From assembly GCA_022605425.2 (NCBI GenBank), contig JAKIMF020000004.1, positions 186,001 to 250,000 on the forward strand: a DNA stretch of 64,000 bases, written 5' to 3'. Below, one piece after another: positions 6,451 through 48,179 of this stretch (the stretch's first letter is position 1; every line of letters begins with the position of its first letter). Source of the stretch: Hamiltosporidium tvaerminnensis FI-OER-3-3 (Eukaryota > Fungi > Microsporidia). The translations under genes and the position numbers were made by a program. A model generated the notes under the pieces. It ran no database searches. It had not been told where the DNA came from and worked only from the letters and a program-made list of their open reading frames with translations.

Positions 6451-6499
6451 GTTTTGGCGTCGTTTCTTTATTCCGGTCACGTCTTTTTATAAAATATTA

Positions 6500-15104: not shown

Positions 15105-16709
15105 ATGATTTTATTGTTCTTTTTACAAATTCTAATTGAAATTTATGAAATCCAAGCTCGAAATTTCAGTTCTAATATTGATATAAAATCCTCAATACAC
15201 GATCAAGATTTAGATGTTCATAAACCCATTATTAAAGAGATAAGAGTAGAACCATTAATTAACGATTATAAAGTAGATTATGACGATAATATTCAGAGCC
15301 TTGATAAAATAATAAATGAAAAACTTGTTACCACTTTGCCAGAAAATAGCAAAGAAGTATGTAACTTAAACACAGAAAACAAAGAAAATTCCACAGAGGA
15401 GAGTATCTTAAATACAGAGAATTGTACTGATGATTTTGGTGATTCAATTGAGAAATGCTACATTGTAAAAACAAAAAGTTCTGATATAACTAAGAATCAA
15501 GAGCTAATAAGCTTTTTAAAATCAAATAATATAAAACCTACGAAAACTTATAGTAAATTGTTCGGCGGATTTACTTTTTGTACAAAAAATCCAAATATTT
15601 CAAAGAAAATCAAATATTTAAGTATTGTATCAGAAATAGAACCGGATTTAGAATATAAGATAAATTCAGTTCAATCAACAATACCATTTTATATGTTTCT
15701 TATGAATAATCTAGATAATACCATATTTAAGAATTATATTATTAACAATCGATTATTTGACTTACTTGGTATAAATACAATATTCAATTATTTATTTGGA
15801 TCTTACACATATAATTTTACAGGAAAAAATATAGAAATCTATGTTTTAGACACAACAGTGGATATAAATGATAGTGAAATTAAAGGAAGAGTTTCTAATT
15901 TATTTAAAAATGATTTATGTAATACACATGGAACAAATGTCGCAAAGGTAATTGGCGGTAAGAATATGGGATTTGCTAAAGATTCTAATTTAAAAATTTT
16001 AAACGTTGTAAATTGTTCAGGTATTGTAAAATTATCTGAAATTATTTCGGGTTTAGAAAAAATCCCAAAAAATTTAAAGAAACCAACGGTTTTATATTTA
16101 AGTATAAATGGACCAAAATCAAATCTTTTCAATCGAATAATATCTAAAATCACAGAAAACAATGTGATTGTTGTTTCTGCTGCTGGAAATAATCATGATA
16201 TAGCATGTAATTATTCACCCGGTAGTAGTGAAAATGTTATAAATGTTGGTTCTATTAATCAAGATGGAGACATATCCAAGTTTAGTAATTTCGGGGGTTG
16301 TATTAGAATATTCGCACTGGGTGAAGAAATTGATTCCAATTCTAATTTAGGAAATAAATTAATGGGTACTTCATTTTCAGCTGCAATAGTAACCGGAGCA
16401 GTAGCAATATATTTAGAAAAGTTTCCAAATGCCACACAAACTGAAATATGGAATTATTTGAATTCCAATTCTATATGGAACAAAAACGGCTATCTAGCAT
16501 TAAAAATACCCCAACTAGATAAAGAAACTGATTCTATAGAGTCTACAAAAAATATTATACCTAATCAATCCACTTACAGCTTTAAAACAATGTGTTTGAA
16601 ATATTATTTTATAGGAATAACTATTCCTATAATATGTATCACATTTTTAATTTTAATTATTTTATATTTCATTAGAAGACACAGAACAAGAAAGGAAATA
16701 ATTATTTAA
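15105..16709 (+). CDS. Subtilisin-like S8 serine protease with signal peptide, I9-like prodomain and C-terminal TM (copy 1)
   Basis: Catalytic motifs YVLDT, HGTNVA, AAGNN, GTSFSA; TM YYFIGITIPIICITFLILIILYFI followed by RRHR; 15102 is TTG, so the first ATG is 15105. Confidence 0.93.
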   Translation: MILLFFLQILIEIYEIQARNFSSNIDIKSSIHDQDLDVHKPIIKEIRVEPLINDYKVDYDDNIQSLDKIINEKLVTTLPENSKEVCNLNTENKENSTEESILNTENCTDDFGDSIEKCYIVKTKSSDITKNQELISFLKSNNIKPTKTYSKLFGGFTFCTKNPNISKKIKYLSIVSEIEPDLEYKINSVQSTIPFYMFLMNNLDNTIFKNYIINNRLFDLLGINTIFNYLFGSYTYNFTGKNIEIYVLDTTVDINDSEIKGRVSNLFKNDLCNTHGTNVAKVIGGKNMGFAKDSNLKILNVVNCSGIVKLSEIISGLEKIPKNLKKPTVLYLSINGPKSNLFNRIISKITENNVIVVSAAGNNHDIACNYSPGSSENVINVGSINQDGDISKFSNFGGCIRIFALGEEIDSNSNLGNKLMGTSFSAAIVTGAVAIYLEKFPNATQTEIWNYLNSNSIWNKNGYLALKIPQLDKETDSIESTKNIIPNQSTYSFKTMCLKYYFIGITIPIICITFLILIILYFIRRHRTRKEIII

Positions 16710-23299: not shown

Positions 23300-24920
23300 T
23301 AATATATATCTTCAAATTTACATATTATAATGATTTTTACAGCATTTTTGTTTCGTTTCTAATTTCTTTCGTTTCCTAATTTTTTTGATTTGAATAAATC
23401 TAATTAAGGAGAAAAACAGTAAAAACAAAATGAAAATCATTAAGAAATTTAAATGGAAAATGGAAAATGAAAAGTAAAAAATGGAAAATGCTATTTTTGA
23501 GGAAATAAGCAGTTTATGTTCAGATTTTGGCTTTTTATCATTCATACTCTTGTAAAGATGTGATAATTCCTCATGGTCATACTTCTTAATACAATTTTTG
23601 CAAGTAATTTTCTTTTTTTTTTGCATTTTAATAGAAAGCTATCACTACCAAATAGCAATAAATTTCCAAGCTGTCTCTCTTAAAAGCGAGCTATTTTGCT
23701 TTTACTTGATTTTGGATTAGTATCAAAACCCTTTTTAGTAGTAAAACATCATTTAGATTAATATAAACGAAATAAATGTAAATTCACATTATTTTTCATC
23801 TGCGCCACATATTTTTCTGGATAAGTAAATTAACCAGTTAGGGCAATGCCGATTTTATTTGATACTTTACGCCTCAAGATCTACTTTATTCTAATAAATG
23901 TCATTTTGATATTTAAATTTGTTTTTCAGTTATTTCTTTAATTTTGAGTTACCGGAATACTCTTCATAAATTGCATATTCTTCGAAATTAACAGCATTTT
24001 TGCATTCGCAACGTTTGAACACCTTAATAAGGGTTTTGCATATTCCAACGCCCTAAGTTTTAATCTGGTTAATCTCGAATTTATATCATAAACTAATTTA
24101 TCTTATTCGGTAAGGCATTTTAAATTTAAAGCAAGTTTGCGTTATTATAGTCTAATATCATCTCCAAATTTGTTCCTGATTTTGTGGATGTTTTGCTCTT
24201 GTAGTAATGGAAGAAATGTTGTATTGCGCACATATTTATCTTATTCATTCATTTACAAACTCTTTCCCTTATCTGTTTCTAGTGAGCAAGATCCATCTCT
24301 ATAAAACTATGATTTTCAGGTTTGGTCTCAAAATTGACTATTGACATGTTTGGTTTGGTATCATAAATTAAAACTTTGTGTGTAAATCCAAAATGTGTAA
24401 GATTCATCTAAGTCGATTATTATTTGTTTAGTATTTTCACATATGAACAAAATTTATTCGAACTTTTTTCAATGAATAATTCTCAGATATAAATGAATTC
24501 ATTATTTTGACTTCGATGCTGGTTATATTGGCTCGTTATAAGTAATTTTCTATTTTTTAACCTAAACCAGCAGTATTTTCTGGTAATTCACCGCTGCATT
24601 CTTTTATACCAATATTACAAGGAATGTGTTATATTACAAAGATTATCTTGCGCTATCTTGTTTTAATCAACTAAACTTTTTATAAGGTTGTCAACATCTG
24701 TGTATTCGCCTTATTACTTTCGATCCATATGTATCGGCTAGTCATTTCAAAGGCCATGTTGTCTAATTGTTATTAATTTGGAAGGTATTTTTCTTAAAAT
24801 TTCGAAGACTTTGGTTCTTCTAATTTAATATTTATCACAATCCACTTAATTTTGATTAAAATTTTTACCTGTTAGAAATACAATATATTTCATTCCTTCT
24901 GAAACATGAATATAGACAAA
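23300..24920 (-). mobile_element. Decayed rve/DDE integrase-type transposase (Ginger2/KRBA2-SCAND3-like), relic 1
   Basis: Collinear homology with 29160-30790; TD.GKEFVN readable near 24270; C-terminal CKNCIKKY. Confidence 0.55.
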
Positions 24921-25211
24921 ATTAAATCGAAATCTTTATTATATGAAAGTTCAGCTAAAAAAATAATTGATTTATTTAAAGTTATTTTTTAGTTTTTTTA
25001 TACTGGTTGTGGAATAGGTTCGACGATAAAAAAATTATTTATCAGGCAGCTTGGATAGTAATTTAGGCGCAAATAAAGTTGTATTTTAGAAATTAAATAA
25101 ATTAATTCTTAGCGGCTTATGTTTCATTGGCTCTATAATATTTTTCGCGGAAAAAGTACTTTTAATCCTATCATCAGCATAATAAATTTATTTATTCTTT
25201 AGCAAATATGT

Positions 25212-25938
25212 GGTGGAGGAAGGATAACCACATAAAAAACTTTCTGCTTGGCAATGAGTATGTGAAACTGTTGTGAGATCATTGTTTGGATTTTTGATGG
25301 GAATAAAACCACCCTAGATCTTCGATCGTTCCCGGGAGTATTTATGAGGAGGAGAGGTCTAAGAAATGGAGAAACTTTTTCTATAATTTATTTGTAGTTT
25401 TTTATGTAACCAGATTGCAGACCGCAGCTGAACATGTAGGTAATTGCCATGTAAAAACATGGAAACCTAACCTTGCTCACCTGGTTAGAAAACTTAGCGT
25501 CTGGGAGATATAAAAATAGAAACCATTAAAAGCCGGGAAAGCTAAGTAACAGGTTATACCTGTTGGTATGACATTGCACTGTCTAGGTGGACCTCATGTA
25601 AATCTCTTAAATATATCTTAGCTAGAAGTTTATTGGGGTCAGAAAGTGTAGAGTAAGTGGGAATGCTGCATAGTCTTGGGGGAGCCCAGGGGGAACTTCG
25701 GCCTTCGATCACACTCCATGTGACGGACATTAACGAACTCTGGGCAACTGCTTTTCCCTATTATTTAGGTTCTAGACACCTGGTAGATGAAAGGCTTTGG
25801 GACGTAGGTATCGCAGGGGTTACTGATGGAGTTTTGGGGTAGCAGTTATTTATGTTCAACCTAGAACTGCGTTAATGTCATAAAAACAAATATAACACTT
25901 GCCACTATTTTAAAAAAGATGTGATACTTTTAAATAAA
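25212..25938 (+). mobile_element. Family-A structured repeat, full length
   Basis: Reverse-complement match to 19400-20122, from GGTGGAGGAAGGATAACCAC to TTTTAAATAAA. Confidence 0.85.
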
Positions 25939-26585
25939 CTCAAGCAAATATGATTGACACATGTTTAAAATAAAGATCTATGAAATTTATTATTTTAAAT
26001 TATGTTACATTTCATTTCTATAGTTGTTAATAAATTCAAATATTTTGTAGAAATGATTAAACTGGTATTTATATATGTTAATTTACAAACATTTTTCAAA
26101 ATAATATCTTCTGGTCTGAAAGTTTATTCATATATCAAATTGAGATAATATCTTTTTGAAAAATTATCCAAAATTTTAATTGAAGTCGATTTCGCACATA
26201 CAAAATAACTTTTAAGTACATATAATGCTCTCGATGTGAGTAAATTATCTAATTCATGTTTTTTACATTGCAAAAAATATTTTGTTCTTGATTTTTATCT
26301 AATTTATGAATATTTCAGGGCAAAAAATAAGTAATTAGTTTGAGAAATTTGCAAAATTTATATTTTAGCGTTTGTAGTTACAAACTTATCTTTTACTTTT
26401 TAAGATTTAAAGTTGGGTTTTTACCAATATTATAAACAATTTGGAATAAAATAATAGATATCTCTTCTTAAAAACCTAACGTAAAAAATAACAATTATAC
26501 AAAAAAAACATAATTCTTCTGACCCAAAGAAACTATAATTATAAACTAAAGCACATAAAAGCAAACTAAACTTTATTAGTTGAAA

Positions 26586-26828
26586 TCATGGTAAACCAAT
26601 GCCAGTGCGAGAATATCCTCCCGCAGCATAAGGGCCTAAATGATCAAAAGGTGATACTAACGCTTTTGGCCCTAACCCATAAAAACCTCCATACAATTGA
26701 CTTCTACCATTTGGTATATCCTCAAAGTTTTCTTTTAAATTACTAGTTTTATCAGAGGATCCATATTTTAAGCAAAGTGCGGATGCAATAGAAAATATAA
26801 AACAAAGTGCTTTTTTCATTTTAAACAT
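26586..26828 (-). CDS. Small secreted peptide precursor, paralog P1 (80 aa)
   Basis: 19-aa signal-like segment, LKENFEDIPNGR|SQ, G/P/Y-rich tail; homologous to four other loci; AATAAAG after the stop. Confidence 0.85.
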   Translation of the reverse strand: MFKMKKALCFIFSIASALCLKYGSSDKTSNLKENFEDIPNGRSQLYGGFYGLGPKALVSPFDHLGPYAAGGYSRTGIGLP

Positions 26829-26850
26829 AATTTATTCCGATTTTTTTGAA

Positions 26851-26888
26851 ATTTATATTTAATTTTGAAACCTATTTATCTCTAGATT
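26851..26888 (-). promoter_or_regulatory. Peptide-family upstream module GATAA-GTTTCA-ATATAAAT (P1)
   Basis: Same ordered motif 15-23 nt upstream of all five paralogs. Confidence 0.65.
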
Positions 26889-29159
26889 CTACTTTGGTTG
26901 AAAAAAAGTCTTTTTATTCTTAAATTTAAGTTCTGGTGTATTCTTTTTCCATATATAAAACATTAAAAATTTCATTTTCAGGATTTAATCGCAGATATGA
27001 ATGTTGAAACAATTATTTCAATTTTTTAATTTAAAGTATTAAATTTTTCTATTCGTTCAATTCAAAACAACAAGAACATGTTTCCTTTCTAAAGAATAAA
27101 GAAATATATAATCTTTGAACATTTTTTTACAGACTCAAATTCCGAATACATCGAACTCATGATAATATTCATCATAGCACAAAGTATTCTATCTAATGGA
27201 TCATAAAAGAAAGATAACGATTTGAGAACCAATTATAAAACACACAAAAAATTGACTTCTATTATCTATAAAATATGTAATTTGCAACTTTATTCTTAGA
27301 TATTTTTATATTAAATTACACTATTTTTTTCAAATAATAATTTTAATAGAAATATACAACACTAGTAGATCTTACTTATCCATGCATTTTCTTAATTGTA
27401 ACCATATTAAATTTATTAAAAAAAAAATACTATCATTAGTTAGCAACAGCTAAAATCGCTATTATAACTTTATTTTCCATTTTCAATGCAATAAATAAAT
27501 GAATGAATTTATAAAAAATAAATTACTTGTAAAAAATAAAATCAAAAATGTAGAAACAAATTATGATGAGCTGAATACAAGTAAAAAGTCAGTGCAAAAA
27601 TAAAAAAAAAACTTATCGGATGATCCAAATATTATCTTTCATGACACAAAAAAAAAACACATTCACCACCAAGTCAAACAGAAATCTAAACCAAGTTGCG
27701 AATTAAATATAATACCTTCGAACAAAACACTACCTCGATCTTAAGTAGTAGAATCTGTTTACGAGTCCTCGAAAAACTATCAAACCTTAATATTGTAGCT
27801 TCTCTTCAAAAGCGGATATCGAAGTGTGAATCATAATCAATTTTTTTTAGCTTACAGGTGGAATGACTTGGCTTCTTTTTTAATATAAATATGGCTAAGA
27901 GAATACACATAAAAAACGCATCAGAGTTTTTTTGTACTTCGATCAGAGAATTTACATGCAATCATATACTTATTATCTTATTCCCGTTCTCTCTTACCTC
28001 TCGGTGTCGAGGGGGAACAAATGAAAAAATTATAGTTGCCTATTTTAATCTGTTAATACTCGAGATTATAGGCGGTTAGCCTATAGATTAAGTATGCTTA
28101 TATGCCACCAAAATGTCAACAATCGATTTCAAACAATTCTACAGATTCATTGCAAGCAGATGGTTTCTAATATAGTTAGTCCTCATTCAACGGCAATTAT
28201 AGTAGCAATACATTAAAACGAATCACGGTGCAAAATAAGGTCGATAAACGAACGAGAAAGAGAACAAAGGAAAACGATTTAGAATCGCCTAAGGACACAT
28301 CGAGGTATATTATTTGGCCAAAGAATTGGGGCATGTCTTGATATATAAGTATTTATGTATTAATTAAAAAATCTCGATTAGGAAACGTGGAGAATTTTAT
28401 TTTAAACTAAAACATAAACAATTTGTTTGATTGTGAAATTTTAGAGCCAATTAATCAAAAATCAGGAGGTTTTTTAGAAGTAAATTTTCTTTGTATATTA
28501 TAAAGAGAGAATATTATACAGGCTGCATTTAGTTTATGGCGAAGCAAACAAAAGAAAGTATAAAATAAAATTATAAGCAATAAATTTCAAAGAGTTTTCT
28601 GGAATTTTGTAGACAAAAGAGGCTAAATACTTCTAAAATGATGAGCTTTGGGAAAATCATGTGTGCTTTTAAATTCAACTAACAACCTAAGGATTTAATC
28701 TAAATTATTTTTAGTAAATATAGTAAAAAATTTCTTTCGCAAAGATGATTTAATGTATTTTTTTGAACTCAATTTGGAAAAAAGCTGTATATTTTAGCTC
28801 TTGCGAGATAGTATTTATCTGGGGTTGGTTATGGTTTTATATGGCTGGTTAATACGTTAATTTTTAATTTCAAGCCTATAGATTTTATGTAAAAAATATT
28901 AAAGAATAATATGAATAATTGCGTAACATGAGTATACAATGCCATTAAGACCAAATGCTTCATAAAGTATGGTTTTTTTCGATTGAAAGTATGTAAATAT
29001 ATTTAATTGTCATCTTGGTTGGTAACTTACCAGAATCGTTACTTCAGTATTTTCTTCATAATGGCTTACTACCATGCTGCAATATCTTTATATAATGTCA
29101 ACCCATTCCGTACCCATATTTTTTAAAAATCCATAAAAAGCTTTGAAATTATTTCATAT

Positions 29160-30790
29160 GCCAGTTCTATTAAAAAAATCATTTAGCCACTCTAATTCAT
29201 TTCTTAATCCATTTCTTGATCGTTTAATATTTTTCGTATTTCTTTTTTTATATTTTAGGAAATAGAAATAACTAAAAAAAGAAAAAAAATGTTATTAAGA
29301 AGTTAAAACAAAAATAAACATAGAAAAACATAAATTTTGAAGATATAAACCATTAATCTTAAAAATTAAAGTTTAATCATTCATATTTTTGTCAGGATGA
29401 GGTAATTCATTATAATAATACTTCTTAATACAATTTTTGCAAACAATATGTTGTGTGCCCCTTACATTCTATTAAAAAGGCAGCATTGTCATCGTAAGCA
29501 ACAACTTTTAAAAGTTTTTCCTCATAGGAGCTAACCATTTTGCTTTTTTTTCGTCCTTAGATTGTTCTCGAAATCTCTCTTTAGTGTCAAACATCACCAG
29601 GATTCGATTTTAAACGAAAAAGGTGTACATCCGTATCATTTTTCATACGAGGTAAAAATTTGTCTCGATATTTAAGTTAAACTGTTGGAAGCTATCAATT
29701 TTATTGGATACTTTATTCTCAAAGGCTACTTGATCCTCATCAGATGGCATTTCCATGTTCTGAAATGTATTTTCAAGAAATTCATTAAATCCGAGCTTGA
29801 GGAATATTCTTTATAAATAGCATCTTCTTCATATTTAACTGCAATTTTGTCTTTACGACCTCTAAATACTTCCATTGGAGTTATCCTTATTGCACTGCTC
29901 TTGGGTTTGATTTAACCATGTACGATTTTCTTATATAAATCGATTCATCTTTTTTGGCTTGATATTCTTAAATTTATAGCAAGCTTGCGTATGGTTGTAT
30001 GGTTGCATCCCATAACTTTCGCTTGATTTTTTGGGTACTTTGCCCGTTCCATAATAAACGATATTTTTTGCTCAACACGTATTCTTTTTATTCGTTCGTT
30101 TAAAAACTCTTTTAATTATCTGTTTGTAAAATTCTAGGCGCGCCTTCAAGAAAAATAGGATTTACAGGCTCGTTTACAACACAGGCTGCTGACTTATTTT
30201 GCAATCGTACTCAAAATAAAACTTATAATATTCATTTAAATGTGTAAAATCGACCCATGACCTCATTATCTATGCAGTATTTCCGCATATCAACAAGATC
30301 TATCTGAATTCTTTCCCATAGATAATTTCCAGTTTTTGTCTGAATTGCATCGTTTCGCTCAAAAACTTATAATAATGGCAATCTTGGCAGGTTTTAAAGA
30401 ATAGTTCTGTTTTCTATCGCTAAATCCGCAGTAGCTTCTTGCAGTTTCCTCGTAATTGCTTTTATATCAATATAATCAAGTGGATGTATAGAAGCAAACA
30501 GTTGGCTTGCGTTTCTGCACAGTCATTTGCTTTAACTTCTTTAATAATATTTTTAAGACACGTCGTACATGACTTGGCGTTTTCAATGTATATATCACCT
30601 ACTCGTTTTAAATATCATCTTTTCTGATAGCGAATCATATTGGATGGTAACTTTCTTGAAATTTTAAAGTTTTTTAAGTCTTATAATTCCAAATTAGTCA
30701 CAATTCAGCTAATTTTGATAAAAATTTTTACTTGTTGAAAATAAATACATTTTTTCGCATCTAAACATGGATATAAACAAAAAAATCGGC
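29160..30790 (-). mobile_element. Decayed rve/DDE integrase-type transposase (Ginger2/KRBA2-SCAND3-like), relic 2
   Basis: Minus strand reads LWERIQIDLVDMR (~30285-30323), TDN..EF (~30110) and R.KYP.NQ (~30035); homologous to 23300-24920. Confidence 0.6.
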
Positions 30791-31215
30791 TCCTCATTAT
30801 CAGAAAGTATACTTTAAACAATTCATTTACTTAAAAGCATTTTTTATCGTTTTAATATATGAGTGGGAGATAAGCATTGTGTCTAACATAAAGTTATAAA
30901 ATTTATGTAGACAGAAAACTTGCCCGAGCTGGTTTATTTCCCTGCGGAGTTATATGTTTTTACTCAGAAAAGATCGGGATAGGTCAAATACCTGTGTTTT
31001 GACCCCAACCCTAATTTGACCACAGAAAGTAGAATAAGTTTCGTTCAAAATGAAGTGGAAGGCAAGTTTTTCTGGCCTAAAATCAATTAGAAGCAGATAA
31101 AAGCATAAAAATAGCAAAATAGTGTTATACTATATTTTAAGTAAATTACATTATAAGAAAAAAAGAAATGAAATTACTTTTTATCTTAAGAACATTAAGG
31201 CTAATAACAAGTAAC

Positions 31216-31936
31216 TTTGTTTAAAAGAAGCACATCTTTTTAAACAGTGGCAAGTGTTATATTTGTTTTCATGACATTAACGCAGTTCTAGGTTTAACAT
31301 AAATGACTGCTACCCCAACACTCCATCGGTAACCCCTGCGATACCTACGTCCCAAAGCCTTTCATCTACCAGGTGTGTAGAACCTAATTAATAGGCGAGG
31401 CAGTTGCCCGGAGTTCGTTAATGTCCGTTGCATGGAGTGTGATCGAAGCCCTCCCCCTGGGCTCCCCCAAGACTATGCAGCATTCCAATTTACTCTACAC
31501 TTTTTAGCCCCAATAAACTTCTAGCTAAGATATATTTCAGAGATTTACATGGGGTCCACCTAGACAGTGCAATGTCATATCAACAGGTATAACCTGCTAC
31601 TTAGCTTTCCTGGCTTTAAATGGTTTTTTGTTTTGTATCTCCCAGGCGCTAAGTCTTCTAACCCGAGTGAGCAAGGCTAGGTTTCCAGGTTTTTACATGG
31701 CAATTACCTACATATTTTGCTGTGGTCTGCAATCTGGTTACGTACAAAACTAAAACTAAATTTGTAGAAAAATTTTCGCCATTTCTTAGACCTCTTCTCC
31801 GCATAACAACTCCCATGGAACGACCGAAGATGTAGGGTGGTTTTGTCCCACCAAAAATCCAAACAATGATCTCACAACAGTTTCACACACTCATTGCCAA
31901 GCAGAAAGTTTTTTATGTGTGTTATCTTCTTTCTAC
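31216..31936 (-). mobile_element. Family-A structured repeat, full length
   Basis: Direct high-identity match to 19400-20122. Confidence 0.85.
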
Positions 31937-34577
31937 ATAACGTTATGAATTATATAATTATTGAAATTTAAAAAAAAATTTGAGAGGCAAGCCAGGCTAA
32001 AAAATCTTTTAACTCACAGATAATATACTATCATAATCCAAAATTTCTTTATCTTAAGACCGGAAACCCTTAAATAATACTCAAAAGCATTCTAAGGAAA
32101 GATAGTTTATTGCCTTTTTTATACATGTTATATATCCATCTGGCGAGCCGAACCTAGAATTGAAATATAAAGGTTGGCAGCATTTTCTAATACGAGTTTC
32201 CCCATAACCAATAACCATTTTAATTATTTATCTTAAGTTTTCTGCGGTGAGTAGGGATAATCTAGCCGATATAAAGAATTAAGTAAAATCTTCTTGTTCA
32301 GGGTAAACTTAGAATTAAAAAACCAGCTACTTACAATACGTGTTATGAAGCCTGCTATTTTTATAGAAGAAGGCAACTATTTAAACATTTGGAAATATTA
32401 GAAGATAGAAAAAAAAACATGAGGTACATTCACGGAAGTTAAAATTAATTTACTTTAACTTAGAGAACTTTTTTTGCCAAATCAATTCCTGCAATTTTTA
32501 GACATCCGATATCGTTTTTTAATCATCGGATAGGAATAATCGGGCTTTAGGCGCAAATCTCTTCGAGTTAGAAGCCAAGATATATGTCGTTAAGTGAAAA
32601 ATAAGACAATACAGACTAGGTTATAAGAAAGCGCCTATCTGCACTTTTGTCAGAAATTCTAAGAAATTTTCATTGTGGCGAGCAGCAAGTGAACACATGA
32701 TTTTGCAATTCTTTGATTGCTTGAGAATAAATATCTATCATATAAAAAACAAAATTGGCGATCTAAATCATAATGAAACATGCCCGCAACTATAAAATCT
32801 TAGGTTCCGCAAAATATACATTAGAAAGGTTTAAGAAGAGAGAAATTTTTCAAAATAAATAAATTAGACAATTTAAATATCGAAATAGAAATCAGAAAAT
32901 TACATTTAAAGCTATATAATGCCAAAAAAAGGATTTGGTAGCTGATGGTGATGCTTATAATTGGCATGTTAAAGGTTACATCAGGCCTCATTACGAGCGA
33001 GTTGGCTATTACATATAAGATAAAAATATATTTCGAGCTACAGGGTGAAATGTCAATGCTGTAAAAGCTCTTGAAAATCGGATGAGCATTTGACGATTAG
33101 GTGTTAAAAAATTCCAGATCTGTGTAAAAAAAGACTTCAAAACGATGTCTTAGTTAAACACATACATTTTTTTAACCACATAACTTCACGTAAGCAAAAA
33201 AAATAAAGTAATTCTGCATGTGAAATCTTATAAGACTGGTACGGAATAAGAGGCAACACTAACATAAAAATCGATGTCAAATATCCTGATATCGGATCAG
33301 TAATTTGTATTTTGAATAGGAAACTGAATATGAATATACTAATTGAAAACGGAATAAACCTAATTTGATTCTTTGTAGACCGCACCAACGAGATAGCTAA
33401 GGTAGTACGAATTATTTTCAATGCAATGAATTTTATTTATAAGTTAAATATAGATATAATTACATATGTTCGGACCGGGGATGGTTTAGGGGGGGATAAA
33501 CCAAATGCAATCTCAAAATCTAAATATGAGCATTAAAACTGGCCTGAAATTTGAGAGATCTTACTCAAAAACAGTTTTAAATCTTTATTTGATCGACGGA
33601 AGATTAAATTATAAAAATATCGATCGGGCTGCGAAAAAGCGTCATATGACGTCATATAAGAAGCTGAGAGAGAAGAGCAATTCATGCCACTACTATATAT
33701 GTGTACCAATGAGTTAGAAGGTCTCGATTGAACAAACGGTAAAGTTAATGTAATATAGATGGATAAAATAAAAGGAATAAATTCATATACTTAAAATCTA
33801 GAAAATGATTCACTTTAAAGAATTGATATAATAAAAAAGGAGTAAAAACTTGGGTAAACTAAATGAAAACAATCGGGAAATAAATCGGATCTAAAATTCT
33901 TTGCTTTTTGTAAAAACAACAGTCACATATGGATTAAAAATAAAATATAATTTTTTTTGAAATATCAAGCAAATTTATTTTGAAAGATTGTCAAAGAGTT
34001 ACAACCATCTTGCTGAATTACTCAATTAATTTAAAAATTTTTAATATTTAATTTTTCTAACTTTAGTAAATAAACAGAGTTAAATCAAAATTTATATTAA
34101 ATATCCATTAGTAATGTACCTTAATATGATTCGAAACAACAATATTAAATTATTAAAAGATTTTTTACGTTTTCTGGATTTTTACACATACAAAATACTT
34201 TTTATCAGTTTGAAAAATCACAATATAATTTGCTCCTTAAATATATTCTTATTCTATTATATTTCAAATAGTAAATACCTTTATTATTCTTTTAAAGTTT
34301 TCATATTTTGGTTAAAAAATTTGTTTATGGTTTTGTAATTTAAATTTATCTATATATTTTAGGGTTTCGTAGTCTATTTTTTTAATTTTTAAGGTTCGAT
34401 CGTTTTTGGTCAAATATAGCTTTTTCCAATTTGAATAAGTGTTTTAATCAAAAAAAGTCATGTATGAAGCAACAAAATTCAATTGAACAAAGACAAAAAG
34501 GTTTTTTAAAAATACGATGAAAATTTAATAATATATTCCAAACATGTAAAATCAAACATGAGCTTTATTGCTATAAA

Positions 34578-34828
34578 TCATGAAAAACCCAAACCCGTAT
34601 GAGGATATCCCCCCATGCCATATGGATCAATTGTTGAAGTTTCGTAAGGCGAGACTACCTTTCTTGAGCCTAAACCAACATACTTCCAAACAATTGACTC
34701 CTACCGTTTGGAATATATTCTGGGTTCTCTTTTAAACTATTCGCATTTCTCGAAGCCCTATAATATTTGTTGCAGAATGTAAATGCAATATAAAATATAA
34801 AATACCATGATATTTTCACTCTAAAAAT
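34578..34828 (-). pseudogene. Peptide precursor paralog P2, frameshifted
   Basis: ATT at the homologous start position; 1-nt loss at ATG-TT-GGT (~34677); the restored frame reads ..IPNGRSQLFGSM(F)GLGSRKVVSPYETSTIDPYGMGGYPHTGLGFS*. Confidence 0.8.
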
Positions 34829-34849
34829 AATATATTTTGTTAATTTTAA

Positions 34850-34888
34850 ATTTATATTTAATTTTGAAACTAATTTCATCTTTTGATT
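34850..34888 (-). promoter_or_regulatory. Peptide-family upstream module (P2)
   Basis: aaatttatatttaattttgaaac is identical to the P1 upstream sequence. Confidence 0.65.
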
Positions 34889-35117
34889 TCATTCTAGTCG
34901 AAAAAAGGAATATTGGAATAAATATGTTCTCATATATTCTTTATTTTATATAAAATATACTTAATATTTTTCTAGACCGAATGAAACTTATGAATGATGA
35001 AACAGTTATCTAGAAACATGTTTTTAATTTATTTAATTTTTAATAATAAAACTTGACTAAGCTAAGATTTTTTAAAATTTAAGAAATTTGTTACTTAGAC
35101 TTTATTTTTTGTTGAGA

Positions 35118-35366
35118 TTAGGGAAAAGCTGAACCTGGAAGATAATATCCACCATGAGCATAAGGACCCGTGCTTAATGGATCATAAGGCGATGTAAAAG
35201 GTTTCGAGCCCACTTCTAGCATACCTCCAAATAATCTACTTCTACTTACAGGAATATCTTCAGGTGCCGCCTTTAATTTGTTTATAATATTGAGTCTATG
35301 TCCTTTTTTGCAAAATGATAAAATGATGTAAAATATAAAATACAAAAAATTTATTTTCATACACAT
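35118..35366 (-). CDS. Small secreted peptide precursor, paralog P3 (82 aa)
   Basis: Signal-like segment, LKAAPEDIPVSR|SR, PYDPL..GPY..GGY; AATAAAG after the stop. Confidence 0.85.
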   Translation of the reverse strand: MCMKINFLYFIFYIILSFCKKGHRLNIINKLKAAPEDIPVSRSRLFGGMLEVGSKPFTSPYDPLSTGPYAHGGYYLPGSAFP

Positions 35367-35380
35367 ATTTGCTCATTCCT

Positions 35381-35415
35381 ATTTATATTTAAATCTTTTT
35401 GAAACAAATCTTATC
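35381..35415 (-). promoter_or_regulatory. Peptide-family upstream module (P3)
   Basis: atttatat..tgaaac..ttatc on the + strand. Confidence 0.6.
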
Positions 35416-36164
35416 GTTGTCAAATAACCGATAAAAATGAACTATCTTAAGTTTGATTTTCAGGTTTTCTATTTAAAACATCGATTATTCTATCTCGTGT
35501 ATTCCATAAAAATTTTATAATAAAATTAGCTTATTGTCATTAATACTTTATCTTTCTATTTGTATCAATCTGAACAAAAAACCTCGATATTTATGAAATA
35601 TATTATTGTATGTGTAATTCTAATTTGTTTTCATTGAAAGAAGTTGTTAAAAACAAAAACCAAAGTTAAATTTTTGTTAGAAAAAGAAGATCTAGCATAT
35701 AAGATGTCAATAAAATGTTTATATACTATAAGCCCGGTTTTCTTTATCATCTTGAAAACACCGTTTTTAATTTATTCAATATCTCAAATTTATTTTAGTT
35801 CTATTTCTCTATTTAGAACACCATATGTTTCACAATATAAATACATCTGCCAATGAAGATATTACACCCTTCTCTTTTTTAAACTTATTTGCTTCCATTT
35901 TTTTATCGTTTCTCATCTATTTTATAACTCATTCTACTTCGGATTTGAGTTTTATCTTCGTTTAAAAAATGAATATTTTGAAAAGAACATTATTTAAAAT
36001 TTACAATTTTGCACATAAAACAATCTAAACTCAAGCTTATGAAATATATAATAGCATTATTAATGAAATAAATTGATTGTATGTACAATCTTTATTTATA
36101 ATAAATAAATCGAGACTTTAAAAAAATGTGAAAATATTAATCAAACTAGACTTTATTATTGAAA

Positions 36165-36413
36165 TTATGGTAAAAAAGTACCTGGTCCGTTTCTAGAATA
36201 TGGATATCCACTGCCAGTACCCAAAGAGCCATAGGGCCGCCCCAATGGTGTTGGACCTAATCCATTCAAATCCCCAAACATTTGACTCCTACCGTTTGGA
36301 CTATCCTCTGAATTCGCTCTCAAGTTACTTCTTTGATACGCACCAGCATTTTTATTACAGCATATATATGTAATGTAAAATAAAAAACACAATAAACATT
36401 CCATTCTAAACAT
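36165..36413 (-). CDS. Small secreted peptide precursor, paralog P4 (82 aa)
   Basis: Signal-like segment, LRANSEDSPNGR|SQ, GLGP..L.RPY; AATAAAG after the stop. Confidence 0.85.
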   Translation of the reverse strand: MFRMECLLCFLFYITYICCNKNAGAYQRSNLRANSEDSPNGRSQMFGDLNGLGPTPLGRPYGSLGTGSGYPYSRNGPGTFLP

Positions 36414-36434
36414 ATTTTCTTGGATTTTTCATGT

Positions 36435-36473
36435 ATTTATATTTTATTTTGAAACATATTTTATCTTTTGATT
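36435..36473 (-). promoter_or_regulatory. Peptide-family upstream module (P4)
   Basis: atttatat..tgaaac..ttatc....gatt on the + strand. Confidence 0.65.
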
Positions 36474-38617
36474 TTCTTCTGGTCAAATCGTCAGGATGAA
36501 ATTAAATTATGTTTTTCCTGATAGGCTCTTTTTCATGTACTAAACAAAAAACATTCTATCTTTTAATTTAATCAGAGTTGGGAATGCCAAAAAAAAATTA
36601 AAAATTATTTGTCCTTAGATATTTTGATACCAAATATGGAAATCCCATATAACTTTTTTTTAGACTAATAGGATGTATAGAGTTAACACAACATTAATGT
36701 AAATAACAGAAAAATTCATCATAGATGGCTTTATTATATTGATATCTATCAGATATTTAAAGTTGTTAAAGGTGTATCATAAAATGATGGCAATTTTTGA
36801 AACTGTTACTAATATCACCATACATTTGAATTCGATTATTTGAAATATATTACGGCTTACGATATTACTGCTTTCTCTTCGAATTCGATAACTCTTAAGA
36901 CAAATATAGGAGCAACATGAAGAATACGGCCTTTTATTCAAAACATAAATTTCTTAGGTTTCCTTACATTTAAATTCATTTTTAAATGCAAATTTTGCAG
37001 ACAAAATATAATTTGCCACAATCAATTAGGGGAAGTTAAAAACAAAAATACAAATCCGTGATGATGGTGTACACATATTTGTTTCTCGTAAGAAAGACAT
37101 TTGCTGACATGAGATTGAATTTAAAACGTATAAAAAAATAAATTTTCTTGCAGTTTTGCCATATCAATGTTGATTGAAACAATATCTTTGTAACCGAATT
37201 AACTTATAATATTTAACTACCGCAAAATTATACTAAAATTCGAAATTTCTTATTTCTTAGCTTTTTTTGTTGTTAAAGCATACTACTTTATATTTATATT
37301 TTTAGTATTTGTTACATTGTTTTTGGTTGCTAATTTTGTTTAAATAAGTTTTTTGTGATTATTAATATTGAATTTTAGTTCTTTTCTTGTTAATAATCAA
37401 AATGGACAAAAAAACCATAAAAATTATATCTATTTCGGTTTAATTGCTTTATATATGAAAATATGCAATCTGAAAGAATATGTTTCTTATATAGAATTTA
37501 GTAAAGTTTAGATATAAATTTGTTTTTTGAAATAACAAACTTGGTTTGGCCATTAAAAGAGGTTTTTAACCATTCCATCGACTATGAAATGATTCTTAAC
37601 CTCTTGTATATATTATTGCGAATTCATTATGAAATTATCAAAAAAAGTATAGGTTCTCTATGAAAGAGTAGGTTAGTTCTAAACATATTTTTATACATAG
37701 TTTAGTAAAACTGGTTTTTTACGATCATGACCGAGTAAGGAAAAAAACTATATGATTTTCCAACATAAAAATGAAAAAAAACGTTATATTACAGAGAAAA
37801 CATTGACTAAATATATTTTGAATTCTATAAAAAGCCTGGGAATGATCTTTGTATGCGCAAGCGAAATAGCATAGAAATTTTAAGACTTTAAAGTAGCGAA
37901 ATATTATATTAGGTTCTAGTCGTTTCAACTTTTTTTTTTACCTAAACTAAATAACTATAGTATTTTTTATTCCAGTATTTTGGTTATTTAACAAATCTAT
38001 ATATGATATCATAAATTTGACTTAGTGAAATTGATTTTTCCACTTTTTTCGTTTGTTTTTAATAAATACCGAACAAACATTCTTTTAATATTGTTCAAAC
38101 TTAGTCTAATGGGCTATTTTAACCCATTCGAAAATACAAGCTATTTACAAGACACGATAGTGGTTTAACCGTCATCGTAAATAATTTCAGTTTAGCCATC
38201 ATATCCAAGTAATATAAGAAAATGGTTTTATTTGCATCTTAGTTAGCATTTTATAAGTTCGGTTGGTAAAATATTTAATTAAAAATTATTTTTTTGATCG
38301 GTAATATCTTATATTCGATATTATTATTTTACAGATTGCACGTTTTTATATTTTTTCTTATTTTAAATATCCATGCTGTTTAGAGATTATTCATCTAATA
38401 TTTTTATATTTTGAATCTTTTTGTTGTGATATGCTTCATTAATTTTATATCGAAAATTATATTTGATAAGAAGTTAATTTAATTTGTATAAAACGAAAAA
38501 GAATAAGTTTTGAATACCAATAGTTCAATTAGTATATAATATATAATAAAATGGTTAGGTATATAGTAAAAAAATGATCTATTTTTTTAATTTTGAACAT
38601 ATCTTTATTTACTTAAC

Positions 38618-38869
38618 TTATGAAAAACCTGCGCTTGCGCCAGACCACCTCGATCCGAAGGAATTATAATATCCACCTAGGGGATCGTATGGTCGTGCTA
38701 AAGGTTTAGGGCCTAATCCAAACATACTAGTAAACATTTGGCTTCGATTATTTAGAATATCTTCCGAATTTGACATTAAATAATCTTTTTTGCTTATAAT
38801 ACTTTCACCAATGCCCAAAACGAATGTTATATAAACTATGAAACACAATATATTTTTTATTCTGAACAC
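38618..38869 (-). CDS. Small secreted peptide precursor, paralog P5 (83 aa); in-frame start is GTG, possibly a young pseudogene
   Basis: LMSNSEDILNNR|SQMF..FGLGPKPLARPYDPLGGY; the start reads ATGTGTTC, with the ATG out of frame. Confidence 0.7.
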   Translation of the reverse strand: MFRIKNILCFIVYITFVLGIGESIISKKDYLMSNSEDILNNRSQMFTSMFGLGPKPLARPYDPLGGYYNSFGSRWSGASAGFS

Positions 38870-38888
38870 ATTTTGCCTGAATTACTGT

Positions 38889-38926
38889 ATTTATATTATA
38901 CTATGAAACAAATGTTATCCTAGATT
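38889..38926 (-). promoter_or_regulatory. Peptide-family upstream module (P5)
   Basis: atttatat..tgaaac..ttatc.tagatt on the + strand. Confidence 0.6.
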
Positions 38927-40127
38927 TTAATGTCATTAAAATCACGAATTAATTCGAATATGGTCGTTCTATAATGTATTCTTTTAATAGATAATGTATC
39001 TAAATACTTTCTTTTGTATTCGATATGGATATTAAATGGAAAATATATTTATAAATATTTTTTTGTAGTCTAAAATAGTAAAAAAAATCTAATTTTTTAT
39101 AATTTTTTTAAGAAAAACTCTATGAATTAAATTATGAAACACACGCACAACCATTTGAATATCCATCGAAATATGAGCTGTTATAAATTATAGCTATAAA
39201 TAGTCTGAAAATTTTGCCTCCATCTTATATATATTTGGAAAAGTTAGATTCTTACGTTTAGATGTTTTCACAATTCATCATGAAATACTGAGTTTTGTCT
39301 ATAACACTGCATTCAACCCCTAATAGATCGTAATGTAAAATTCAAACAATCATATATCTTTCTCAAAATATTTGTGCTCTTTGGTCCTTTATAGGCCATT
39401 TTTAAAATATTAGACCTTGCAGCAGATCCAGATTTGGAAGCCAAGATTAAATAAAAATATATTTATACAAGATTTTATTTTTTTTTTTCGTATAACACAT
39501 TCTATATTGCTGAATGTTATCATAATTATACATTTATAAACATAATTTGGATAATTTTTAACAGTTTGAAATATTTATGTATGTAAATACCGAACTATTC
39601 CCCATATACTTCCATAGTCTTTTAAATAGCTTTAATTTATAAAGATTGAATTTATTTCTTAGCCTTCTCTAATTGAAGCACCTAGACTGATTAAAAAACA
39701 GTTCATTTTTTTAAAACTTTATAGAGAAAGATCAAATTTCGTATGTAGTGTACCTTTTTTAAAAAAATTATGTTGAAAATTTCGACAGAATATAAACAAT
39801 TATATTAATTTATACTTTATTACTTATTCCACTCATCTTCTACCTCTCGATGTATAGAATGAAAAGATGGAAACCAATATATTCTGTCTCCAATCAATGT
39901 ACTGGTATTTCCTTTATCTATTCTTCTTTGACGAAAATTCGTTTAATGTTTCAAACTATTATGACTTTCACAAATTCCTCTATTTTTCGACAATTTGATT
40001 GCTTTTTATATTCCCTATGCAATATTTTAAATTCCTTACCATTCATTTATTTTCGAGACAGTCCTTTATTGTTCCATTTGTTTCTTCTAATATTTTGTAA
40101 TTCATGATTATAGGTAATGATTCATAA

Positions 40128-40233
40128 ATCCACTGTGGTTTATATCCTACTAAATTTTAACAATAAATTTCAAATTAATTTCACAGACTCATTGCCAACC
40201 ATATGTTTTTAATGTGGTTATTCTCTCTCCACC
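40128..40233 (-). repeat. Isolated family-A head fragment
   Basis: actcattgccaa...ttttaatgtggttattctctctccacc matches 20075-20122. Confidence 0.7.
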
Positions 40234-40551
40234 TAAAGACGACAATAAATGAAAAAAATTACTGTAAAAAAAATTACTGTAAAAAATATTTATTATAGAG
40301 AATATATATTGTGAATATAGAAACTTTTTTAGTAATTGTATTTTTGGTAACAAAGGTGACTTTTAAGAATTAAAGATAAATGTAAAAGATTAAGAGGAGG
40401 TGATGTAAAATAAAGCTTACTGTAAAAAAACCAACCGGATCTTTAAGAATATAACGGTAGTATTTGACCAAGAAATTAAAAAAAATAAATTTCATTTTTT
40501 TTTTAATTCAAGAATTCGGTATTGCCAAAAATATTTTCATAAACCCATATA

Positions 40552-40794
40552 ATGGACAATTTATTGATATTAAAAGATATGTTAGTTAAAAATAGAAATA
40601 AAGAAGATATATTGTGTCAAATAAACATTTGCTATGATATTATTTTATCGAATTATGATTATTATTTTACAACTATATTTATAAAGCTTGTAAAGGAACT
40701 TAAAAACGTTCCTTTTTACAGTTTGGAAATTAAAAAAATTTTGAAAACAATTGATTTTATAATATTTCCCGTAAAAAAGTCACTAATTAAATAA
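40552..40794 (+). CDS. Small hypothetical protein, 80 aa
   Basis: aaaCCCatataATG start context as in the conserved genes of this window; AATAAA ~14 nt after the stop. Confidence 0.55.
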   Translation: MDNLLILKDMLVKNRNKEDILCQINICYDIILSNYDYYFTTIFIKLVKELKNVPFYSLEIKKILKTIDFIIFPVKKSLIK

Positions 40795-41059
40795 TTATTT
40801 TTTTTGCAATAAATGCTCTAATTTTCTATTTTTTTTAAATTCTTTTAGACAAATCCTTCATTTAGAAATCTTAAAATATTTTTACGTCAGAAATAGAGTG
40901 GCTTTTTTTACCAAATGTTTTTCAAGAGGTTGACTACAGAAGTGTTTAACTCCGGGTATAAAAAATATTTTTTATCTAAAATTTCTTTAAAATAAAAAAG
41001 TTTTACTGAAATAATTTTTTTAAATAAAAATTTACCGAAAAATATATTTTATTATTAAT

Positions 41060-45289: not shown

Positions 45290-45348
45290 AAATAAACAAT
45301 GATATAAATTAAAACCGAAATATTAAATACACGACATAAAGCTTTTTA

Positions 45349-45873: not shown

Positions 45874-46211
45874 GCATTTCTAAGTAAAATATTCTATTTA
45901 TAGAAATATAGAAATTCGATGTTAAAAATTGTTAAAAAGATAGAAAATAACTTTTAAAAGTATTAAAATAAATTTAAATTCATTCAAATTTTTTGATATA
46001 TCTTAAAAGTATCTTTGCAATAAAATTTTCATAAAAAAAATTCTAAACTTTGCAAAATATTTTTGTCAGTAAAATTGAAGGAAAAATAATGGAAAAATAT
46101 TTTACTGAAGATTGAAGCTTGAACTAAAGAATAATTGGTTAAAATATTTTAAATATTTAAAATTAGATCTGGAAAAAGAAATTTAAATAACAAAAACCCC
46201 ATAAAAAAATC

Positions 46212-46493: not shown

Positions 46494-46568
46494 ATATCTG
46501 TCAAAAGATTTGTCATATAAAAATAAATGTTTTTTAAAAAATGGTTTTTCTTCGATTTTTAAGTCTTT

Positions 46569-48179
46569 TTAAATAATTATTTCCTTTCTTGTTCTGTGTC
46601 TTCTAATGAAATATAAAATAATTAAAATTAAAATTAAAAATGTGATACATATTATAGGAATAGTTATTCCTATAAAATAATATTTCAAACACATTGTTTT
46701 AAAGCTGTAAGTGGATTGATTAGGTATAATATTTTTTGTAGACTCTATAGAATCAGTTTCTTTATCTAGTTGGGGTATTTTTAATGCTAGATAGCCGTTT
46801 TTGTTCCATATAGAATTGGAATTCAAATAATTCCATATTTCAGTTTGTGTGGCATTTGGAAACTTTTCTAAATATATTGCTACTGCTCCGGTTACTATTG
46901 CAGCTGAAAATGAAGTACCCATTAATTTATTTCCTAAATTAGAATTGGAATCAATTTCTTCACCCAGTGCGAATATTCTAATACAACCACCGAAATTACT
47001 AAACTTGGATATGTCTCCATCTTGATTAATAGAACCAACATTTATAACATTTTCACTACTGCCGGGTGAATAATTACATGCTATATCATGATTATTTCCA
47101 GCAGCAGAAACAACAATCACATTGTTTTCTGTAATTTTAGATATTATTCGATTGAAAAGATTTGATTTTGGTCCATTTATACTTAAATATAAAACTGTTG
47201 GTTTCTTTAAATTTTTTGGGATTTTTTCTAAACCCGCAATAATTTCAGATAATTTTACAATACCTGAACAATTTACAACGTTTAAAATTTTTAAATTAGA
47301 ATCTTTAGCAAATCCCATATTCTTACCGCCAATTACCCTTACGACATTTGTTCCATGTGTATTACATAAATCATTTTTAAATAAATTAGAAACTCTTCCT
47401 TTAATTTCATTATCATTAATATCCACTGTTGTGTCTAAAACATAGATTTCTATATTTTTTCCTGTAAAATTATATGTGTAAGATCCAAATAAATAATTGA
47501 ATATTGTATTTATACCAAGTAAATCAAATAATCGATTGTTAATAATATAATTCTTAAATATGGTATTATCTAGATTATTCATAAGAAACATATAAAATGG
47601 TATTTTTGATTGAACTGAATTTATCTTATATTCTAAATCCGGTTCTATTTCTGATACAATACTTAAAGATTTGATTTTCTTTGAAAGATTTGGATTTTTT
47701 GTACAAAAAGTAAATCCGCCGAACAATTTACTATAAGTTTTCGTAGGTTTTATATTATTTGATTTTAAAAAGCTTATTAGCTCTTGATTCTTAGTTATAT
47801 CAGAACTTTTTGTTTTTACAATGTAGCATTTCTCAATTGAATCACCAAAATCATCAGTACAATTCTCTGTATTTAAGATACTCTCCTCTGTGGAATTTTC
47901 TTTGTTTTCTGTGTTTAAGTTACATACTTCTTTGCTATTTTCTGGCAAAGTGGTAACAAGTTTTTCATTTATTATTTTATCGAGGCTCTGAATATTATCG
48001 TCATAATCTATTTTATAATCGTTAATTAATGGTTCTACTCTTATCTCTTTAATAATGGGTTTATGAACATCTAAATCTTGATCGTGTATTGAGGATTTTA
48101 TATCAATATTAGAACTGAAATTTCGAGCTTGGATTTCATAAATTTCAATTAGAATTTGTAAAAAGAACAATAAAATCAT
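46569..48179 (-). CDS. Subtilisin-like S8 protease, copy 2
   Basis: Same catalytic motifs; 8 substitutions and a 2-aa TM insertion relative to copy 1. Confidence 0.93.
   Translation of the reverse strand: MILLFFLQILIEIYEIQARNFSSNIDIKSSIHDQDLDVHKPIIKEIRVEPLINDYKIDYDDNIQSLDKIINEKLVTTLPENSKEVCNLNTENKENSTEESILNTENCTDDFGDSIEKCYIVKTKSSDITKNQELISFLKSNNIKPTKTYSKLFGGFTFCTKNPNLSKKIKSLSIVSEIEPDLEYKINSVQSKIPFYMFLMNNLDNTIFKNYIINNRLFDLLGINTIFNYLFGSYTYNFTGKNIEIYVLDTTVDINDNEIKGRVSNLFKNDLCNTHGTNVVRVIGGKNMGFAKDSNLKILNVVNCSGIVKLSEIIAGLEKIPKNLKKPTVLYLSINGPKSNLFNRIISKITENNVIVVSAAGNNHDIACNYSPGSSENVINVGSINQDGDISKFSNFGGCIRIFALGEEIDSNSNLGNKLMGTSFSAAIVTGAVAIYLEKFPNATQTEIWNYLNSNSIWNKNGYLALKIPQLDKETDSIESTKNIIPNQSTYSFKTMCLKYYFIGITIPIICITFLILILIILYFIRRHRTRKEIII

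Follow-up and report, generated by a model that had tools for sequence, protein, structure and literature searches.

What do the short, related genes clustered on contig 13 of Hamiltosporidium tvaerminnensis FI-OER-3-3 encode, and what would their products do for the parasite? In Microsporidia few secreted proteins are recognisable, and the parts used for host interaction and spore building are mostly lineage-specific. Our study addresses this question in a stretch of 64,000 nucleotides (hereafter, the window), which corresponds to bases 186,001-250,000 of contig 13; the genome comprises 21,638,905 bases in 17 contigs, and the BUSCO completeness of the assembly is 94%. H. tvaerminnensis is a microsporidian that parasitises Daphnia magna, and a near-chromosome assembly exists for it (PMC10542269). 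The window is AT-rich, with a GC content of 0.21-0.40. The original prediction, made from the letters of the window, saw in the cluster a diversified family of processed effector or signalling peptides, or else of spore-coat peptides. The reading that we favour, and to which we assign a probability of about 0.5, is that six genes (P1 to P6) constitute a family restricted to Hamiltosporidium, whose small secreted products most likely help to build an extracellular structure of the parasite.

A six-frame profile search of the complete 21.6-Mb genome recovered exactly six loci and none further, all of them within 39 kb of contig 13 (185.66-224.87 kb). In this search, the four open minus-strand copies (P1, P3, P4 and P5) had E-values between 1.7e-41 and 3.2e-37, and P2 had one of 7.6e-14; across the six loci the values spanned 1.7e-41 to 2e-8 (2.4e-30 once P6 had joined the profile). 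By this measure, the similarity among the copies lies far beyond chance. Four of the six genes are intact, with intron-less open reading frames (ORFs) of 80-93 codons: P1 (26586..26828, minus strand; 80 amino acids (aa) from the first ATG, or 77 aa from the second Met, as in public gene calls), P3 (35118..35366, minus strand; 82 aa), P4 (36165..36413, minus strand; 82 aa) and P6, which opens at an ATG, encodes 93 aa and is located on the plus strand at contig 13 185659-185964, that is, 37-318 nt before window base 1. The other two are broken. P2 (34578..34879, minus strand) consists of two pieces in different frames, which were read separately; its frame changes near position 34673, an ATT occupies the site of the family ATG, and its listed ORF begins at an upstream ATG that overlies the promoter module of the gene itself (34850-34870). 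P5 (38618..38869, minus strand) has a disrupted start, since its 83-aa ORF opens at a GTG and the ATG located one base upstream of it is out of frame and is followed by a stop after four codons. The break in P2 is also found in H. magnivora contig L013, and the state of the P5 start is likewise present in that species; with both defects recurring in GCA_004325035.1, an assembly of H. magnivora, an assembly error confined to a single genome does not account for them.

The existence of a paralogous family in a microsporidian, as originally proposed, is therefore upheld by the genome-wide search, with six members. The proposal had counted five minus-strand loci of about 80 codons; the ORFs of P1, P3, P4 and P5 are found at the positions given, but P2 is frameshifted and has no family ATG, and the ORF of P5 is out of frame with its ATG. 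The sixth member, P6, presents one base less in H. magnivora, where an A is missing in a GCGAAAG run (GCA_004325035.1, L054:1501-1781 compared with L006:1477-1758). The public model of this gene (P0005, 84 aa) omits the conserved LFG..GLG core and thereby keeps the frame; the 1-nt deletion is either a genuine break or an error of short-read assembly. Beside P6, a 1037-aa ORF rich in Ser, Glu and Lys (477-3590, minus strand; no Pfam match) is kept in H. magnivora (L054).

Three independent lines indicate that these loci are real genes: the ratios of nonsynonymous (pN) to synonymous (pS) differences, the retained expression signals and the constraint observed between assemblies. Over the whole gene, the paralog pairs show a saturated pS of 0.63-0.81 and a pN of 0.33-0.52; pN is lower than pS in every pair, and pN/pS is below 1 wherever it could be computed. 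At a shallower time scale, the comparison covered 14.6 kb of the locus, over which identity to other Hamiltosporidium assemblies is 98.5-99.3%. Against these assemblies, the intact coding sequences (CDS) differ in 1 of 741 nt, whereas the surrounding non-feature DNA differs in 167 of 12,457 (Fisher p = 0.0011), which makes the intact CDS about tenfold less diverged than their surroundings. The P1 CDS and its promoter show no differences from GCA_004325065.1, while their flanks differ by 0.78%. P4 with its promoter differs in 0 of 321 nt, the neighbouring ICMT gene in 0 of 594, and no difference separates P4 from H. magnivora contig L014 over 429 nt, the contig as a whole differing by 1.5% from the window. 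The P3 ortholog of H. magnivora (P0003) has one residue different. In addition, the non-coding promoter and poly(A) blocks persist where the divergence between copies should have erased them. These results indicate that the family is under purifying, not diversifying, selection at both deep and shallow time scales, and the idea of a diversified effector family fits poorly with them, whether judged by pN/pS in each pair or by the differences between assemblies.

The same data bear on a non-functional origin, in which the loci would be chance ORFs within a repeated DNA element or a family wholly in decay. Two of the six copies are broken, the P6 of H. magnivora carries its 1-nt deletion in a public assembly, and the cluster is set among transposon fragments, all of which such an origin would explain. 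It would not explain why pN stays below pS in all pairs despite the saturation of pS, why the intact CDS have diverged so much less than the DNA around them, or why the similarity between copies is limited to promoter, CDS and poly(A) signal. We consider a non-functional origin very improbable.

DNA alignment of the copies revealed a conserved element, GAT.A.AT..GTTTCA(AAA), located 39-43 nt upstream of the start codon, a TATA-like box closer to it, at 26-29 nt, and an AATAAA(G) 7-11 nt past the stop codon. Short 5' leaders and poly(A) signals near the stop are known features of microsporidian genes (PMC4589312). In P1, the promoter module GTTTCAAAA-N4-ATATAAAT occupies 26851..26871 of the minus strand, with GTTTCA beginning at -43 and the TATA-like box at -29 relative to the ATG, and the AATAAA (26572..26577, minus strand) lies 8 nt past the stop. 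The remaining members in the window have the same arrangement on the minus strand: P2 has its AATAAA at 34564-34569, past the end of the ORF; P3 has its promoter element at 35400-35415 and its AATAAA at 35101-35106, past the stop; P4 has its module at 36435-36455 and its AATAAA at 36152-36157, past the stop; and P5 has its element at 38904-38919 and its AATAAA at 38604-38609, past the stop. The similarity between copies is confined to these elements and the CDS, and it ends within about 100 nt of the ORFs.

A search of the 21.6 Mb for the full module, written as GTTTCAAAA-N(0-6)-ATATAAAT, gave five matches, of which P1, P2 and P4 account for three, and the reversed control gave none. The remaining matches of our two promoter-pattern searches were set aside as chance or relics. 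An exact copy of the module is also present on the minus strand of contig 13 at 108937-108957 (L008:1501-1521), 77 kb from P6, with ATG-TTC-AGA and a 14-codon ORF beginning 31 nt beyond it; this site was undetected by the protein profile and may be a decayed seventh member. We also considered a promoter private to the family and discarded the idea: the full module is family-specific, yet its GTTTCA core at about -41 is common to the three genes for subtilisin-like (S8) proteases of this genome, a Ras-family GTPase gene and one other ORF, of 155 aa and with a signal-like start, GTTTCA(A) lying 39-43 nt before the ATG in all of these as in the peptide family. Outside the family, these sites are upstream of 15105 and 48179 in the window, at L031:2733-2740, and upstream of 1976 in L049 and of 1904 in L051. 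In a sample of 58 other ORFs of at least 150 aa, GTTTCA was found at -39 and -42 in two, one of which is the Ras-family GTPase gene; within 150 nt upstream of 60 sampled ORFs it occurs 12 times, 4 of them at 39-42 nt. GTTTCA(A) looks like a positional promoter element of a subset of genes. The peptide genes do not have the CCC motif of their housekeeping neighbours and carry the TATA-like box instead. This motif, a known microsporidian start signal, precedes the ATG by 5-11 nt in the kinase gene (upstream of 20189), the ICMT gene (upstream of 41653) and the saccharopine-dehydrogenase-like gene (upstream of 4686).

The encoded proteins begin with 19-20 residues in which basic residues precede a hydrophobic core of 13-16 residues, the N-terminal net charge being 0 in P4. 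The residue at the putative -1 position is small (Cys, Gly or Ser), and the 19-aa hydrophobic stretch ends in Cys in P1, P3 and P4, in agreement with what was first described. The 12-residue hydropathy maximum is 2.2-3.0 at the N-terminus and no higher than 1.3 in later stretches. From hydropathy and the -3/-1 pattern, the N-terminus is likely to be of the signal-peptide type, and the UniRef name of the H. magnivora P6 ortholog is 'Secreted protein'. Since no later hydrophobic stretch is present, the proteins are predicted to be soluble after removal of the signal. AlphaFold2, run on the family alignment, placed a helix at residues 2-23 and modelled the remainder as coil with a pLDDT of 43-52; the ESM Atlas model has a pLDDT of 0.40. 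Past residue 42, the tail is Cys-free and contains 17-27% Gly, 6-15% Pro and 12-20% Tyr plus Phe. The original description of this tail as a Cys-free segment of 38-41 aa with GLGPK, P(Y/F)D.L and GGY motifs agrees with the sequences in general, although P3 starts with S-R-L-F-G and has EVGSK, and P4 has GLGPT and PYGSL. The likely product would be a disordered, slightly basic secreted protein of about 60-73 residues, with no Cys and abundant Gly, Pro, Tyr and Phe.

Conservation is distributed unevenly along these proteins. Mean pairwise identity, given as the range between alignments with and without P6, is 0.35-0.42 for residues 1-19 (signal), 0.09-0.15 for residues 20-30, 0.46-0.54 for residues 31-48, 0.42-0.48 for residues 49-64 and 0.31 for residues 65-82. 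From this segment-wise profile, we infer that the functional core is one block, approximately residues 31-64, which straddles Arg42 evenly. As had been noticed, the 23-aa segment that follows the N-terminal stretch ends in ..E-D-I-P-N-G-R, with Arg at residue 42 in P1, P3, P4 and P5. Residue 42 is in fact basic in the six members (Arg in five of them, Lys in P6) and is followed by an invariant Ser43; Asp37 is invariant in five aligned members and replaced by Tyr in P2. In the protein alignment, the site reads (E/S)-D-(I/S/R)-(P/L)-x-(G/S/N)-(R/K)|S. At the other end, the intact copies terminate in (L/F)-P and both broken copies in F-S.

Special attention was given to the possibility that these proteins are prepropeptides, in which, once the signal is removed, a protease would cut after Arg/Lys42 and release bioactive peptides of 38-49 residues with host cells or microbes as targets; a candidate for this protease is the membrane-anchored S8 enzyme, of subtilisin-like type, that is encoded in and beside the cluster. 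Several features are consistent with this proposal: the basic residue 42 and Ser43 are kept in all six members and stand in the best conserved block, residues 20-30 show almost no constraint, as expected of a spacer, and the (L/F)-P ending distinguishes the intact copies from the broken ones. Monobasic convertase sites usually bear a further basic residue at subsite P4, P6 or P8, a notation unrelated to our gene names. In every member, however, subsites P4 (Pro or Leu), P6 (Asp) and P8 are non-basic. The segment before Arg42, which had been described as acidic, has net charges of 0 (P1), +4 (P3), +2 (P4), -1 (P5) and +3 (P6). Conservation is equal on both sides of Arg42, the supposed mature part is no more variable than the rest, and pN/pS stays below 1 in all places where it could be computed. 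The genome shows no kexin/furin P-domain, as its 21.6 Mb, translated in six frames, contained nothing that matched the profile PF01483 (P_proprotein) at E <= 1. Moreover, NbSLP1, the sole microsporidian subtilisin with mapped sites, cleaves itself between Ala and Asp (PMC9421246). From four tested features of a convertase-processed prepropeptide, three (the site, the convertase and the acidic, variable layout) were not found, and the cleavable signal is likely but unconfirmed. The layout of a processed bioactive peptide, on which the original prediction was built, is thus not supported, given the lack of a convertase-type site, of a kexin P-domain and of a variable mature part, and given a core that spans Arg42. 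A further cleavage after Arg/Lys42 is at most a possibility, and we regard the prepropeptide proposal as unlikely.

Its candidate protease deserves separate consideration. No more than three Peptidase_S8 genes exist in the genome, each coding for a plain type of subtilisin, and two of them are neighbours of the cluster. Copy A (15105..16709, plus strand), with a Peptidase_S8 domain and a C-terminal membrane segment, lies between P6 and P1 and has GTTTCA 41 nt before its ATG; copy B (46569..48179, minus strand) lies within an inverted duplication; and the third gene is found at contig 13 469,618-471,189 (L031:1119-2690). Copies A and B are 9.9 kb from P1 and 7.7 kb from P5, respectively. The inverted duplication (14134-17983 and 45293-49148; 3.86 kb, 98.2% identical) brackets the cluster, with one arm between P6 and P1, and carries the S8 gene (535/537 aa), a 222-aa ORF and a 174-aa coiled-coil-like ORF. 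Located between S8 copy A and P1, at 20189-22723, there is also an 844-aa kinase of ROCK/PKN-like architecture, which combines a protein kinase domain with an HR1 repeat and a C1 domain.

The proximity of two of the three S8 genes, 7.7-9.9 kb from cluster members and one of them between P6 and P1, and the GTTTCA(A) that the three share with the family genes, 41-43 nt before the ATG, favour a functional relationship. Nevertheless, the link is weak because GTTTCA occurs elsewhere too, at about -41 in 2 of the 58 other ORFs sampled; because S8 orthologs on four other microsporidian contigs (Encephalitozoon-like, Edhazardia, Conglomerata) have no family-like small ORFs nearby; because NbSLP1 cuts at Ala|Asp; and because complex prediction was uninformative, its score of 0.03 for the S8 catalytic region (215-490) with P1 (20-80) counting neither for nor against binding. 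Furthermore, the S8 duplication is recent, as its 98.2% identity indicates, while the peptide paralogs are old. We consider it improbable that the family and the S8 enzyme of the cluster constitute a substrate-protease module releasing (Leu/Phe)-Pro-ending peptides of 38-49 residues that act on the Daphnia host. If such a module did exist, Microsporidia would thereby gain their first described examples of processed peptides serving as effectors or signals, and processing by a neighbouring subtilisin would represent a new kind of microsporidian biology; on present evidence, this is a routine orphan family.

In agreement with the original statement that no known family could be recognised, five of the proteins gave no Pfam match at E <= 10, and two very large searches returned only Hamiltosporidium hypothetical proteins as relatives, the nearest coming under the names H. 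tvaerminnensis and H. magnivora. A word-seeded profile search of 5.8 billion clusters found the family itself and Hamiltosporidium hypothetical proteins only, and an exhaustive hmmsearch of 1.84 billion representatives found Hamiltosporidium proteins and three long repeat proteins. The latter (P0007-P0009; 995-1923 aa, with identical tandem units and, in two of them, MBG-like adhesin repeats) were rejected as relatives because their scores sum 8-13 weak repeat matches. A degenerate-pattern scan of metagenome contigs yielded 341 pattern matches and no relative. Among the databases searched, the family appears to be restricted to the genus. It had been assumed that such ORFs fall below annotation cut-offs; this holds only in part, since public Hamiltosporidium assemblies already list four of the members, by gene calling or annotation, as hypothetical proteins, and the family is undescribed rather than invisible. 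Exact-protein look-ups aimed at transcript contigs matched only genomic contigs from NCBI assemblies.

Known spore components and host peptides were compared as well. The profiles of the polar-tube protein PTP2 (PF17022) and of MICSWaP (PF17018) gave no match to these five proteins, and the genome has PTP2 and MICSWaP genes of its own on C6 and C7. Mimicry of crustacean orcokinins (NFDEIDRSGFGF-type peptides, PMC4696782) was rejected: the likeness of NFEDI..RS to NFDEIDRS lacks significance, the best local alignments scoring 14-21 with shuffle p = 0.18-0.76, and multi-copy orcokinin precursors were absent from the matches of the exhaustive profile search. An allatostatin-A-like 'FGLG' was likewise discarded on inspection, being present only in P5 and P6, with neither Tyr/Phe at -4 nor a basic site after it. 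By protein language model, the family comes nearest to small proteins of arthropods, to cuticle proteins and to a nematode-specific peptide family, with scores of 0.76-0.83 that serve as leads only.

What role, then, do these proteins play? We rank a structural or matrix role first, in line with the spore-coat alternative of the original prediction, an unprocessed effector second and a processed peptide third, none of them being demonstrated. The structural role is placed first because the family is conserved and not diversifying, because its genes are presumably co-regulated by a TATA-type promoter unlike that of their housekeeping neighbours and because its products are disordered and rich in Gly, Pro and aromatic residues, a composition that resembles that of self-associating extracellular matrix proteins. 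In the mechanism that we propose, each intact gene would work as a compact transcription unit made up of the conserved element, the TATA-like box, an intron-less ORF and a nearby AATAAA. The product would enter the secretory pathway by means of its signal sequence of 19-20 residues, whose removal would leave a soluble, disordered protein of about 60-73 residues with a core (31-64) that does the work, presumably as a component of the spore wall, of the sporophorous-vesicle matrix or of polar-tube-associated material.

Alternatively, the products could be unprocessed, host-exposed effectors of about 60 residues, secreted from meronts or sporonts into the Daphnia cell, where the 31-64 core would bind a conserved host target. 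A secretory N-terminus in proteins with neither membrane anchor nor Cys would suit this role, as would a lineage-specific, clustered family with birth-and-death turnover, which is typical of microsporidian host-interaction families (PMC3879972), and a promoter of the TATA type, unlike the CCC-type starts of the housekeeping neighbours. On the other hand, there is no sign of diversifying selection, the proteins being nearly identical in H. tvaerminnensis and H. magnivora; the exhaustive profile search detected no similarity to Daphnia or any host protein; and the family is very small. An effector of this kind seems to us rather unlikely, if less so than the prepropeptides discussed above.

It is important to note that several points weigh against the structural reading that we prefer. 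The structural role is deduced from composition and the pattern of selection only. The signal call comes from hydropathy and the -3/-1 pattern, not from SignalP, and translation may in truth begin at the second Met (residue 3-4), given how near the TATA-like box is to the first ATG. Four RNA runs from four studies gave 0, 2 (partial only), 0 and 0 reads on 35090-41089, these being runs without the parasite. The promoter element of the family is absent from the genome's own PTP2 and MICSWaP genes, so that the structural reading has no support from co-regulation. All the language-model and structure neighbours are at noise level and were rejected as relatives. Finally, short ORFs often go unannotated in eukaryotic genomes, and any in other Microsporidia would be missed by protein databases; therefore the restriction to the genus is a lower bound on the range of the family. 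Even so, the locus provides a compact candidate set for spore or vesicle matrix proteins, or for host-exposed proteins, in a Daphnia-parasite model, consisting of four intact genes, a promoter module and a 34-residue core; in addition, the family promoter could be used as a natural reporter promoter.

The window also contains several mobile or repeated elements. A degraded non-LTR retrotransposon is located at 50062-53486, with GC raised locally to 0.33-0.40 and its RVT_1 domain split over two ORFs in different frames, and retrotransposon-related pieces are found at 6101-7956 and 59458-61479, with copies 66-73% identical. Amid the peptide genes there are four copies, in both orientations, of a repeat of about 720 bp (19400-20122, 25183-25938, 31216-31976 and 62921-63662; 78-93% identity), and a second repeat forms a pair at 23533-25002 and 29372-30859 with 66% identity.

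Compared with known systems, the family belongs to the lineage-specific secreted proteins of Microsporidia, a kind that is common in these parasites: it has a secretory N-terminus, six paralogs and no homologs outside a narrow clade. With families such as interB and the Nematocida large gene families (PMC3879972), it shares the signal-type N-terminus, the narrow clade, the clustering and the birth and death of copies. It differs from them in its size (about 80 aa, six copies), in its Cys-free, low-complexity composition of Gly, Pro and aromatic residues, in being under purifying selection instead of diverging rapidly and in its conserved promoter module of the TATA type. Small Gly/Tyr-rich proteins of invertebrates (arthropod cuticle-type proteins, nematode NLP/CNC and the 'nematode-specific peptide' family) are alike in size, signal peptide and disordered Gly/Tyr/Phe/Pro tail, but they have no sequence homology with our family, which presents a unique conserved core and not simple GGY repeats. 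Animal and fungal prepropeptides, including neuropeptides, antimicrobial peptides and the yeast alpha-factor and other Kex2 substrates, are similar in their short precursor, signal sequence and variable spacer, and the conserved basic residue before a Ser-Gln/Glu-Leu/Met-Phe/Tyr stretch adds to this likeness. In contrast to them, the family has no dibasic site and no basic residue at subsites P4, P6 or P8, its pro-segment is non-acidic and its mature part shows no hypervariability; a kexin-type convertase could not be detected in the genome, and processed products are not known. Another parallel is offered by the oocyst-wall precursors GAM56 and GAM82 of Eimeria, which are tyrosine-rich, cut by subtilisin and cross-linked. 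They are comparable in that the wall of a transmission stage may be built from small Tyr-containing peptides with the participation of a subtilisin, and here an S8 gene lies inside the cluster; however, the Eimeria precursors are large, whereas the proteins of our family are small and moderate in Tyr, with no support for cleavage, cross-linking or a location in the wall.

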